Of a DNA stretch of 5,966 bases, positions 1 through 5,966 are shown piece after piece (within the stretch, counting starts at the first letter, position 1; every line of letters begins with the position of its first letter). Location of the stretch: NCBI GenBank assembly GCA_018985225.1, contig JADGIF010000613.1:1-5966 (forward strand), in the 5' to 3' direction. A program made the position numbers and the translations under genes. The DNA is from Amoeboradix gromovi X-113 (lineage: Eukaryota; Fungi; Sanchytriomycota). The notes beneath the pieces were generated by a model. That model was not told the origin of the DNA, did no database searches, and worked only from the letters and a program-made list of their open reading frames with translations.

Positions 1-150
1 TTTTGCTTAGATGCTCAAAGACCTCATATATTTGAACGAGATGCAGGGTCTTCTAGTTTTATTTTGAAGAGGGGATTGATAGTAATGAAAGAAAATTGGT
101 ATGATAGAAGATTTTTTGTTAATTTCCTCCGTATGGTGCGCCTTCTTTAA
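1..150 (+). CDS. 5'-truncated C-terminus of a putative Fanzor/TnpB-like RuvC nuclease (left copy)
   Basis: Frame +1 is open from base 1 to TAA at 148-150: FCLDAQRPHIFERDAGSSSFILKRGLIVMKENWYDRRFFVNFLRMVRLL*. Nearly identical to the right-end ORF, where the preceding RLRKCTFC is visible. C..C-x9-ERDAGSSSFI aligns by eye with the TnpB/Fanzor C-terminal CxxC...(D/N)RDxNAAxNI motif. Confidence 0.62.
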   Translation, partial: FCLDAQRPHIFERDAGSSSFILKRGLIVMKENWYDRRFFVNFLRMVRLL

Positions 151-186
151 AAACGAGTTAGTCTAGTTTTTATATTTGGTGTCCCA
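1..186 (+). mobile_element. 3' (right) end of a repeated putative Fanzor-carrying element, left copy
   Basis: Matches the reverse complement of 5699..5889: bases 1-63 identical, scattered substitutions and two small indels in the middle, last 31 nt (156-186, AGTTAGTCTAGTTTTTATATTTGGTGTCCCA) identical. Similarity ends abruptly after 186. Confidence 0.8.
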
Positions 187-206
187 AATATTATAATCAC
201 TTCTCA
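124..206 (+). ncRNA. Putative omegaRNA (scaffold to 186 plus about 20-nt flank-derived guide AATATTATAATCACTTCTCA); 5' end unknown
   Basis: Overlaps the ORF end and runs to the element boundary. Hairpin 148-172 (TAAAAACGAG-TTAGT-CTAGTTTTTA). Potential GCGCC(138-142)/GGTGT(178-182) pairing. Both are retained in the other copy. Boundaries are inferred by analogy with TnpB/Fanzor loci. Confidence 0.45.
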
Positions 207-754
207 TAAAAAGTCCAGGTTTTCAGGAAATCGAAAATTAGCATATAGAAACTAGCAATGCCAGCCGCTCAACAGCAGGCGCTCACACTTTCCTGAATTG
301 AGATGTATATTCCAGGCACATGTTCCTAGTTGCCATATGGTTACTATCTGCTTCGAAATGACAGTGTGCATTTGTGTGACATCAAATTGGTTTGTTCAGA
401 GTACCCACATTGCAAAACTACTGGTCTTCAAGTTTGCAACGAAATAAATAACGGCAGCTGATAAGTCAAGACATTGTCTTGGCATCATGCGACAATTAAG
501 TAGAAAACTCTTAATGCTAAGAATCCTAATACATGCTTATCTCTAGATTTTCAAAACAGCTAAAGAAACTTAGTACAATTGATAGACATGAGAGTTGTTT
601 CAGTATTAGACAAGAGTTTTTTGATGCAACAACCATCCTAATTCTTGAACTTCATCTTAATATTTATACTGGTATGACTATTTAACATTTTTGCTTTTAA
701 AGCAAGAAATAAACATAACGTATTTTACCCTTTCATTCTTAGCCTAGTTCTTAA

Positions 755-2030: not shown

Positions 2031-3911
<1,881 letters not shown>

Positions 3912-3934: not shown

Positions 3935-5258
3935 TTACTCAAAGTAATCCTCGCTTAATTTGATCCAATACAATGTGCCTACATCGTTGCATAGTAACAA
4001 ATTATCATCCTGTATAAAACTGTTCACTATACATCCACTGATTTCTACACTGATATCACTCATCCAGCCCTGCAGCGTATAAACAGATATCTTATCAGTG
4101 GTGGTAATTATAAAGTTATTTCTCGTCAACCAGTGAATCCCTGATGGCGGGCATTCTATTTGAAATGATCTTATCGGTGTAACTATTTCCGGCAATTTAG
4201 TCTAAATTAGCATAAATTACAGGGATGTGCCATAAACTTACATGATCTATAGATGCAGTTAATGCAAATTCATTTAAGCAAGTCATTAAATAAACTGAAT
4301 CAACTTTAAATTTTGCATCATTGATTAATGGCCTGTTATTCATTTGCATAGTTATACTATACATACCATATAGACACCCTACTATATACTGATGCATCTT
4401 CACTAGACACAATGCACCAGGTTTTGTTGATATGGAAGCTATTGGTTCATTAATCATTTTTATATTCCATAGAAGCAGCTCACCATCTTCCGACAGAGTA
4501 GAAAGTGTGTTGCTATTATGCGATATCTGCTTTACAGGATACTTATGGCGATCCAGGAGGTTGATTTCTTTATTTGTGCGGGGGTCAATAATATGTATTT
4601 GACCGTATTCAGTACCAATGTAAATAAGATCATGACATAAAGATGCAGTAGTATTTTCAACTAGTATCGAAGATGACCTAAAGTGAACTCCAGACTCGGT
4701 AGTGAGTACAATGTCATTCCTGTAAAACTGACAAGATATGACAAAAGACTGCTTAAGCTCAATCTGGTCGTAAATATATACATGCTTAGTAGTAGCATGT
4801 ATGCTCATCATTAGTTCAATCTTTTTGGCAGCTTCAACCACGAAATCATTTAGTGGAATGATTTCAGATTTATTTTCGACTTCCAATACTTGTTGAACGT
4901 CCTCACTAAGTCTAGACTCATTGTCTGAAAGTGAAAGCATTTCAATGTCCTGAATATCTTCTACTTCTGGCTCAATTTGAGTTGATTTATCATATTTGAC
5001 GTTGTTGATAATCATCTCAAAATGTTTGAATTTGGCAACTGATAATACAATAGGCGATTTTATAGATGTATCTTCAGCTGCCGGTTCAGTCGTTTCTACG
5101 TTTTCATCAGCAACAGCGGGTACCTCGATAGACTCTAAAATATTTTGAATACTTTCCGTCGAAGACATATTGGTACCGGAGTATCTTTTTTGCCTAAGCC
5201 TTCTTAGCTCTGCTAATTTGCGCTTCTTTTGTTCCAATAGTGCAGCTCTATCCGACAT
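3935..5258 (-). CDS. Cytoplasmic dynein intermediate chain (PAC11/DYNC1I-like), join(5258..4221,4201..3935), 434 aa
   Basis: N-terminal charged helix MSDRAALLEQKKRKLAELRRLRQKR. LSVAKFKHFEM...KYDKSTQI resembles the adjacent Tctex1- and LC8 (KxTQT)-binding sites. LNDFVVEAAKKIE resembles the Roadblock/LC7-binding helix. WD40 segments HKYPV...LSEDGELLLWNIKM and LTASID.VSLW. Removing a 19-nt intron fuses the 353-aa and 86-aa ORFs (..WHIP|TKLPEIV..), adding a final WD-like segment (CNDVGTLYWIKL). Confidence 0.88.
4202..4220 (-). other. Predicted 19-nt spliceosomal intron (phase 0)
   Basis: Minus strand reads GTAATTTATGCTAATTTAG: GTAA donor, GCTAAT branch-point-like motif, TAG acceptor. Excision bypasses the premature stop and restores the frame exactly into the 3935..4195 ORF. 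Confidence 0.8.
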
Positions 5259-5678: not shown

Positions 5679-5760
5679 CGATATTCAGATTTCACAACTG
5701 GGACACCAAATATAAAAACTAGACTAACTAGCTTTTAAAGGTGCAACATACGCAGGAAAT
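5679..5760 (-). ncRNA. Putative omegaRNA of the right copy (scaffold to 5699 plus about 20-nt guide GTTGTGAAATCTGAATATCG); 5' end unknown
   Basis: Minus-strand hairpin 5737-5713 (TAAAAGCTAG-TTAGT-CTAGTTTTTA, 10-bp stem with one G-U). Potential GCACC(5744-5740)/GGTGT(5707-5703) pairing. Same terminal 31 nt as the left copy, followed by a different flank. Confidence 0.45.
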
Positions 5761-5966
5761 GCTATTATTAATAAAAGTCCTTCTGTTATACCAATTTTCT
5801 TTCATCACTTTCAATCCCCTCTTCATAATAAAACTAGAAGACCCTGCATCTCGTTCAAATATATGAGGTCTTTGAGCATCTAAGCAAAAGGTGCATTTTC
5901 TTAGACGGTACTCTTTTCTAGAGTCATTTTGTAATGTCATACTAACATCATTACTCTTATCTATTC
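5699..5966 (-). mobile_element. 3' (right) end of the repeated putative Fanzor-carrying element, right copy; continues beyond the window
   Basis: 5699..5889 is the reverse-complement match to 1..186. The element's ORF stays open to the window edge. Confidence 0.8.
5728..5964 (-). CDS. 5'-truncated C-terminus of a putative Fanzor/TnpB-like RuvC nuclease (right copy)
   Basis: The frame of the 70-aa ORF is open upstream of its ATG to the window edge (IDKSNDVS-MTLQNDSRKEYRLRKCTFCLDAQRPHIFERDAGSSSFIMKRG...), so that Met is probably internal. RLRKCTFC followed by ERD matches the second Zn-finger CxxC pair and RuvC-III R-D arrangement of TnpB/Fanzor. Confidence 0.65.
   Translation of the reverse strand: MDKSNDVSMTLQNDSRKEYRLRKCTFCLDAQRPHIFERDAGSSSFIMKRGLKVMKENWYNRRTFINNSISCVCCTFKS

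Follow-up and report, generated by a model that had tools for sequence, protein, structure and literature searches.

The window, meaning the whole stretch of DNA analysed here, is an entire contig of 5966 bp (C893) from the Amoeboradix assembly, which comprises 10.55 Mb in 1319 contigs. Both of its ends, positions 1–190 on the plus strand and 5694–5966 on the minus strand, carry one repeat in the form of two partial inverted copies, A and B, which are 93–95% complementary. The repeat belongs to a family that we refer to as family 1, and two host genes lie between the copies. The features of the window are listed below.

1–190, plus strand: copy A, 3' part of a probable Fanzor1-derived mini-element of family 1, clipped by the contig start
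1–150, plus strand: copy A ORF tail, stop codon at 148–150, frameshifted relative to the family consensus
100–191, plus strand (copy A), and 5694–5785, minus strand (copy B): predicted terminal hairpin, candidate omegaRNA scaffold
157–186, plus strand: copy A right inverted repeat of 30 nt, placed by alignment of 42 right ends and followed by the flank AATA
About 199–440, minus strand: decayed Fanzor2/IS607-type mini-element stub, TNB/RuvC-III remnants with stops, adjoining the right end of copy A
2031–3890, minus strand: CDC5-like protein of 619 aa with two Myb repeats (PF13921, 3.5e-23; PF00249, 1.8e-22), a host gene outside the element
3935–5258, minus strand: WD40-repeat protein in two exons, a host gene outside the element
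4202–4241, minus strand: 40-nt intron of the WD40 gene (GTAAGT..TTTAG), read from the sequence; the frames join in phase
5694–5966, minus strand: copy B, 3' part of a probable family-1 mini-element, clipped by the contig end
5699–5728, minus strand: copy B right inverted repeat of 30 nt; the flank at 5694–5698 reads AGTTG on the minus strand
5731–5966, minus strand: copy B open frame, 70 aa from a Met at 5940, TAG stop at 5728–5730

The CDC5-like Myb gene and the WD40 gene are both supported by Pfam, which bears out the eukaryotic housekeeping neighbours of the original prediction. The intron of the WD40 gene joins the ORF at 4197–5258 to the ORF at 3935–4195 in frame, both on the minus strand. 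Positions 440–2030 are poor in ORFs apart from a frame of 91 aa at 1059–1334 on the minus strand, a putative gene with weak matches to C2H2 zinc fingers (E = 0.0016).

Translation of copy B (5728–5940, minus strand) gives MTLQNDSRKEYRLRKCTFCLDAQRPHIFERDAGSSSFIMKRGLKVMKENWYNRRTFINNSISCVCCTFKS, and translation of copy A (1–150, plus strand) gives FCLDAQRPHIFERDAGSSSFILKRGLIVMKENWYDRRFFVNFLRMVRLL. Both contain the motif RLRKCTFC-x9-ERDAGSSSFI(M/L)KRG. The edge of the element is sharp, at 186/190 in copy A and at 5699/5694 in copy B, and the distance from the stop codon to the GTCCC/GGGAC edge measures 36 nt in copy A and 29 nt in copy B, close to the 30–36 nt that had been predicted. The ORF had also been predicted to end at KRG, which proved incorrect, as the frame continues for about 33 aa beyond this point. 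In the family consensus the frame terminates with STFKNELV*, and its stop codon lies within the inverted repeat; relative to this consensus, the TAG of copy B is premature. Of the two CxxC pairs that make up the zinc ribbon, the window has the second and lacks the first. Copies A and B are 3' stubs from which RuvC-I and RuvC-II are absent, and therefore they cannot be nucleases.

Both contig ends are situated inside the repeat, and the end at 5966 is about 270 nt from the right end of the repeat. Copies on several other contigs are clipped by the contig end at this same point of about 270 nt, and a genome-wide scan with a 27-mer places many right ends 45–300 nt away from the end of a contig. 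Since the assembly is broken up by this repeat family, the numbers of copies given below, those of long copies included, are lower bounds.

The repeat family and its ends

An alignment with copies from other contigs shows a repeat unit of 420–730 bp, roughly 500 bp as a round figure, with terminal inverted repeats (TIRs) of 29–30 nt. The TIR sequence, about 30 nt long, is TGGGACA(C/T)CAAATATAAAAACT(A/G)GACTAAC. A 27-mer from the right end has 807 matches in the genome when at most one mismatch is allowed, against none for the reversed control. Together with the translations of the two window copies, this confirms that the predicted motif is part of a multicopy ORF. The first genome-wide look gave 953 candidate places by DNA and 988 by protein, and the family accounts for approximately 4–5% of the DNA in this 10.5 Mb genome. 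Internal Fanzor sequence is found at about 44 candidate places, compared with about 800–1000 right ends.

The short forms, or mini-elements, retain both 30-nt repeats, a left part of about 250 bp and a right part of about 270 bp. The right part codes for the last ~80 codons, which include the second CxxC and the RuvC-III RD motif, and RuvC-I and RuvC-II are both missing. Among 150 copies scored, the longest open frame that holds the stub motif is about 164 aa. A C-terminal block of about 82 aa is conserved, and three kinds of sequence are found upstream of it, designated types A, B and C. In types B and C the upstream frame is unrelated sequence. When type A was mapped onto a long copy of the element (L076), it proved to join the first 46 codons of the parent gene in frame to the last ~80 codons of that gene; examples are an ORF of 130 aa at L013:1355–1744 and one of 128 aa at L045:1501–1884. 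The type A ORF begins at a Met with the basic N terminus MAKRKQKLSYTSKSKKKK. By eye, basic, NLS-like N termini are seen in type A (MAKRKQK..KSKKKK) and in the related protein P0015 (MTKRKKK). The final bases of copy B, ctattc, are those of the short type C continuation (ctattctag), unlike those of type B (ctatttcttt).

For the flank statistics, each copy was oriented by its ORF. The dinucleotide CA is invariant at positions −5/−4 upstream of the left end (21 of 21 copies). At the right end, the flank has A at +1 in 42 of 44 copies and T at +4 in 36 of 44, with G at +5 in only 23 of 44. Identical 4-mers are present on both sides in 5 of the 21 complete copies, as well as in the long copy L076 and in a metagenomic relative (L101), and the other 16 complete copies differ; the matching 4-mers are ATAG, AAAC, ATTT, ACTT, AAAT, ATTT and AATT. 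A scan for target-site duplications of 2–10 bp at all offsets did not reveal a consistent duplication.

A hairpin is predicted for the ~55 nt at the 3' end of the sense strand, formed by base-pairing between the right repeat and the last codons of the ORF. For the two window copies, the z-scores of the sense strand are −2.5 and −1.7, against −0.7 for the antisense strand. An equivalent hairpin is built from different bases in L101 (z = −2.6). RNAalifold on 42 right ends gave −10.4 kcal/mol with one compensatory pair and no usable covariation; the copies of the family are too alike for covariation to support the hairpin.

The parent gene and its relatives

The parent element is about 1.7–2.1 kb long, and its single gene codes for a divergent Fanzor1-type protein. 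One long copy of 1.66 kb (L076:1256–2915, on C33) has the same TIRs at both ends and contains only a frameshifted Fanzor-like frame in three pieces. As expected of ghost elements, the short forms share both inverted repeats with this copy, their internal deletions can be mapped onto it, and the right end is retained. A second long copy (L079:30–1313, on C1157), which is 63% identical, has an open frame of at least 427 aa that reaches the contig start. Its ORF contains, in order, the motifs IGIDPGVK, YRQWKFRKYG, LIFWGDGQF, INESYTSKHCSVCEN and YRLRKCTFCLDTQRPSLFERDVGSSSFILKRG, and within it GIDPGVK and LIFWGDGQF are accompanied by INESYTSKHCSVC, RLRKCTFC and FERDVGSSSFILKRG. The two long copies carry a RuvC-I GIDPG and, where the canonical RuvC-II Glu would be expected, WGDG; an alternative Glu in E-x-x-TS, the two CxxC pairs and RD are also present. 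The proteins P0005, which is encoded in this genome on C33, and P0001 extend the stub upstream with VDEYHTSKMCSVCENEIDKSN, which comprises the first CxxC pair and the E-x-x-TS motif. Because the stub is continuous, inside the same TIRs, with copies that have the RuvC-I Asp, the rearranged RuvC-II, the first CxxC and RD, it belongs to the Fanzor1-type family. The genome assembly has no complete, intact gene that belongs to exactly this lineage. The region between the repeats contains no transposase, and no DDE transposase was found within any long copy.

An intact Fanzor1-type ORF of 685 aa, which represents a sister lineage, is encoded elsewhere in the genome (P0012; L091:1460–3517, minus strand, on C363). 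It matches PF07282 with 33 bits and contains the motifs CIDPG, IYWGDGSY and PEFKTSKLCCDC..CPNC..EDRD. It is a candidate for an active nuclease in this genome.

The signature described for Fanzor and TnpB proteins is D-x(125,275)-[TS][TS]-x-x-C4-x(5,50)-RD in the C-terminal half (Bao & Jurka 2013, PMC3627910). The L079 ORF conforms to it as D116-x217-TS334-CSVC-x28-CTFC-x10-RD384, as do seven relatives (P0015–18 and P0012–14). The window stubs do not, having only the second CxxC and RD. In Fanzors the RuvC-II Glu is replaced by Gly or Pro, and an alternative conserved Glu is located about 45 residues downstream (PMC10530073). In this family WG(D/N)G is invariant in 13 of 13 sequences, and a conserved Glu occurs 34–39 residues downstream, three residues before TS. 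As far as motifs can tell, this arrangement fits the rearranged RuvC-II of Fanzors.

By BLASTP, the L079 ORF matches P0012 with an E value of 7e-9. Against PF07282, for which the cut-off is 26.3 bits, proteins of this lineage score 20.8–24.4 bits (E = 3e-5 to 4e-4), below the cut-off, and those of the sister lineage (P0012–14) score 32–36 bits, above it. The window stub and the two type A ORFs of 130 and 128 aa (L013 and L045) gave no match to PF07282. The stub, and a profile of 17 stub sequences, also had no match in Pfam or among the PDB sequences, and phmmer with the 427-aa L079 ORF found none among the PDB sequences. When a profile of 13 family sequences was compared with the PDB, the best match was Fanzor1 from Guillardia theta (PDB code 9cer), with E = 0.0019 and a collinear alignment of about 310 positions.

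The AlphaFold2 models are poor, with a mean pLDDT of 37 for the L079 ORF and of 50 for an intact relative, whose RuvC half is below 50. A Foldseek search of 350,542 PDB chains placed Fanzor1 proteins (PpFz, SpuFz and GtFz) in all of the top seven positions, with E = 0.012–0.46 and TM of about 0.3 for a poor query model; this ranking gives specific but weak support. The intact relative has approximately 350 aa before RuvC-I, and residues 50–270 are modelled as a confident helical region. Taken with the PDB profile match and the Foldseek ranking, the model suggests that the family is closer to Fanzor1 than to Fanzor2 or TnpB, with an enlarged helical REC region.

The original prediction of a Fanzor-family element is therefore upheld as regards ancestry, by the long copies and by the Fanzor1 proteins as best structure matches, and not as regards the window, which contains no candidate nuclease. 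It had been tied to the presence of RuvC-I and RuvC-II motifs in the full-length frame, and the longer copies do not lack them. The RuvC-I Asp and the first CxxC pair that had been looked for are found in the longer copies (L079) and not in the window. The expected RuvC-II Glu is not at its canonical site, where the longer copies have WGDG, and an alternative Glu is found in E-x-x-TS. Of the comparisons that had been proposed, the profile search returned Fanzor1 as the best structure match, with PF07282 falling short of its cut-off for this lineage and the stub unmatched; the structural search was uniform in its ranking of Fanzor1, with weak E values and poor models.

Relatives outside the genome are few. 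The stub profile had nine matches among 1.84 billion representatives, all of them short fragments save for a single spurious repeat protein. Word-index searches of 5.8 billion proteins gave three, three and five matches. The lineage is rare in databases, with about ten relatives among 1.8–5.8 billion proteins. Scans of viral contigs, whether by protein, by alignment or by TIR, revealed no relative; five 18-mer matches were attributed to chance, as they had neither a partner repeat nor an extension. A metagenome scan found one intact relative of 642 aa, approximately 30% identical, at L101:4185–6113 on a contig of 31.5 kb (JACCDR011043409.1). The element extends over 4066–6132, its TIRs match those of family 1 at 23 of 29 positions, and AATT is present on both sides. 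The stop codon of the 642-aa gene is inside the right repeat. Neighbouring genes on the contig code for a dUTPase, a TFIIB-like protein and an SMC/RecF-like ATPase, among unknown genes. To judge by its gene set, the contig may be giant-virus DNA.

Comparison with known elements and origin of the mini-elements

The element Spu-1 from Spizellomyces punctatus is about 2.1 kb long and has a single Fanzor1 ORF, repeats of 30–33 nt and no internal transposase (PMC10432273, PMC3627910). CA is conserved just upstream of Spu-1, and its TAM is CATA (PMC10432273). The S. punctatus genome also contains 134 ghost loci of about 550 nt, and RNAs from their right ends work with SpuFz1 (PMC10432273). The parent element of family 1 is similarly an element of about 2 kb with a single Fanzor1 gene, inverted repeats of about 30 nt, CA outside the left repeat and no transposase inside. 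As with the Spu-1 ghosts, the short derivatives keep the repeats and the right-end region, and the host is a zoosporic fungus. In contrast to Spu-1, the protein is too divergent for phmmer, no intact gene of its own lineage is assembled, and the short forms outnumber the long ones by about 20–50 to 1, with about 800–1000 copies versus 134 ghosts. Unlike the Spu-1 ghosts, the short forms here keep the last ~80 codons, with the stop within the repeat.

The family is collinear with GtFz1 (9cer) through the RuvC-I DPG, the GWG found at the site of the RuvC-II Glu, E-x-YTS-x-C-x-x-C and the C-terminal motif. The last codons of the GtFz1 ORF are also part of its omegaRNA (PMC10432273), and those of the present ORF are part of the predicted hairpin. 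The E value of this match is only 0.0019, however, the host and the transposon context differ, and the GtFz1 loci are reported without inverted repeats. In the Sola2-type Fanzor1 elements of Dictyostelium and Polysphondylium (DFa, PPa), the gene is a passenger in TIR elements with 4-bp AWWT duplications (PMC3627910). The four nucleotides on each side of the family-1 elements resemble these in being A-W-N-T-like, and they are identical in the 5 of 21 copies and in L076 and L101 described above. In contrast to the Sola2-type elements, 16 of the 21 copies have mismatched 4-mers, and the TIRs are 30 nt long, compared with 12–21 nt. With TnpB of IS200/IS605 (ISDra2) the family shares a split RuvC and a zinc ribbon before RuvC-III. 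The omegaRNA of TnpB, which takes its guide from the flank, comes from the right end and shares sequence with the 3' end of the TnpB gene; for this arrangement there is a candidate parallel here. TnpB has a canonical RuvC-II Glu, no TIRs and an HUH TnpA partner, whereas the present family has a rearranged RuvC-II, a much larger N-terminal helical region and TIRs as boundaries.

The two ends of the window are very probably partial copies of a non-autonomous mini-transposon, of the 'ghost' or MITE-like kind, that was formed by internal deletion of a Fanzor1-type element. Both copies run off the contig, so that the part upstream is unreadable, and many contigs break at the same point within the repeat, as would also be seen if one or both copies were full-length and possibly active Fanzor1 genes clipped only by the contig ends. 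This is extremely unlikely, since the small number of places with internal Fanzor sequence relative to the number of right ends sets a prior of a few percent; moreover, the end of copy B matches the short type C and not the long form, a frameshift disrupts the tail of copy A, and compared with the consensus the TAG of copy B comes early. An ordinary MITE of a DDE transposon, in which the Fanzor-like motif arose by chance or from an unrelated zinc-finger gene, would account for a window stub that has no Pfam or PDB match of its own and holds a single CxxC, and the TIRs and possible AWWT 4-mers are typical of a cut-and-paste element. Such an origin is scarcely credible, because within the same TIRs the stub continues into frames with the full signature that are collinear with GtFz1, and the long copies have no internal DDE transposase.

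The frame of about 110–130 aa in the mini-elements could also be a small protein under selection, for example an NLS with half a zinc ribbon, acting by guide-RNA binding or by interference with the nuclease. An open frame of 107–138 aa is indeed found in many copies, type A joins its first 46 codons to the tail in frame, and pN/pS is 0.60, below 1, for the 67-codon tail of 39 mini copies compared with the family consensus. However, indels occur in 17 of these 39 copies and new stops in 7, and the changes are distributed 110/78/89 over the three codon positions, without an excess at the third. The three types have different upstream frames, those of B and C being unrelated sequence, and a value of 0.6 for pN/pS can be a legacy of the evolution of master copies. 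The substitution pattern of the tail fits mostly neutral decay, and we regard selection for such a protein as very improbable.

The element that very probably gave rise to the mini-elements by internal deletion is about 1.7–2.1 kb long, bounded by TIRs, and carries one divergent, TnpB-derived Fanzor1-type gene. Because no transposase is present between the repeats, they would have been spread by a transposase supplied in trans. The right end may have been retained for its transposase-binding repeat and its candidate omegaRNA scaffold, as at the SpuFz1 ghost loci. The guide of the putative omegaRNA would then be the adjacent host sequence, and the CA upstream of the left repeat would be equivalent to the TAM, comparable with CATA in SpuFz1.

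It is conceivable, if rather unlikely, that the 800–1000 mini-elements act as a working guide library, in which omegaRNAs with guides from their own flanks would be loaded in trans by a remaining Fanzor1, either of their own lineage or the 685-aa protein of C363. If true, this could explain how a streamlined genome of 10.5 Mb tolerates 4–5% of its DNA in one family. In a related scenario, the in-frame mini-protein of 130 aa, with its NLS and zinc ribbon, might modulate the guide system.

A literature search found no paper on both Fanzor and Amoeboradix. Through this family, a sanchytrid-type fungal genome is seen to harbour a divergent Fanzor1 lineage that is rare in databases. Compared with the one chytrid from which the ghost architecture is known, there are about six times as many ghost copies here, and the genome has less than half the size. 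Tests of a new Fanzor1 and of its TAM could start from the intact relatives (642 aa in L101 and 685 aa in C363) and from the invariant CA. Annotation of short 'zinc-finger' ORFs in this genome calls for caution, as hundreds of them are transposon stubs.

A second family of the Fanzor2/IS607 type

The decayed stub that adjoins the right end of copy A belongs to a second family, unrelated to family 1. The frame at 199–440 on the minus strand reads ..HCHFEADSNHMATRNM.., compared with ..NCHLKIDRDHMAARNI.. in family 2. With a PF07282 score of 74 bits, family 2 has at least 560 candidate places in the genome, as miniature derivatives. An hhalign comparison of the family-1 alignment with a family-2 protein aligned only the zinc-ribbon/RuvC-III stretch, with a probability of 24%. 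The end sequence of family 2 also flanks family-1 copies in L015 and L029. The juxtaposition of the two families suggests nested or adjacent insertion.

A full-length TnpB/Fanzor2-like ORF of 671 aa is located at L072:1473–3488 on the minus strand (C542). It matches PF07282 with 67 bits, and its best match in the PDB is 9b0l (mimivirus L79; 1.6e-13). The 5' third of this ORF is overlapped, in another frame, by a serine-recombinase frame of 171 aa (L072:2767–3282, minus strand; PF00239, 6.6e-16).
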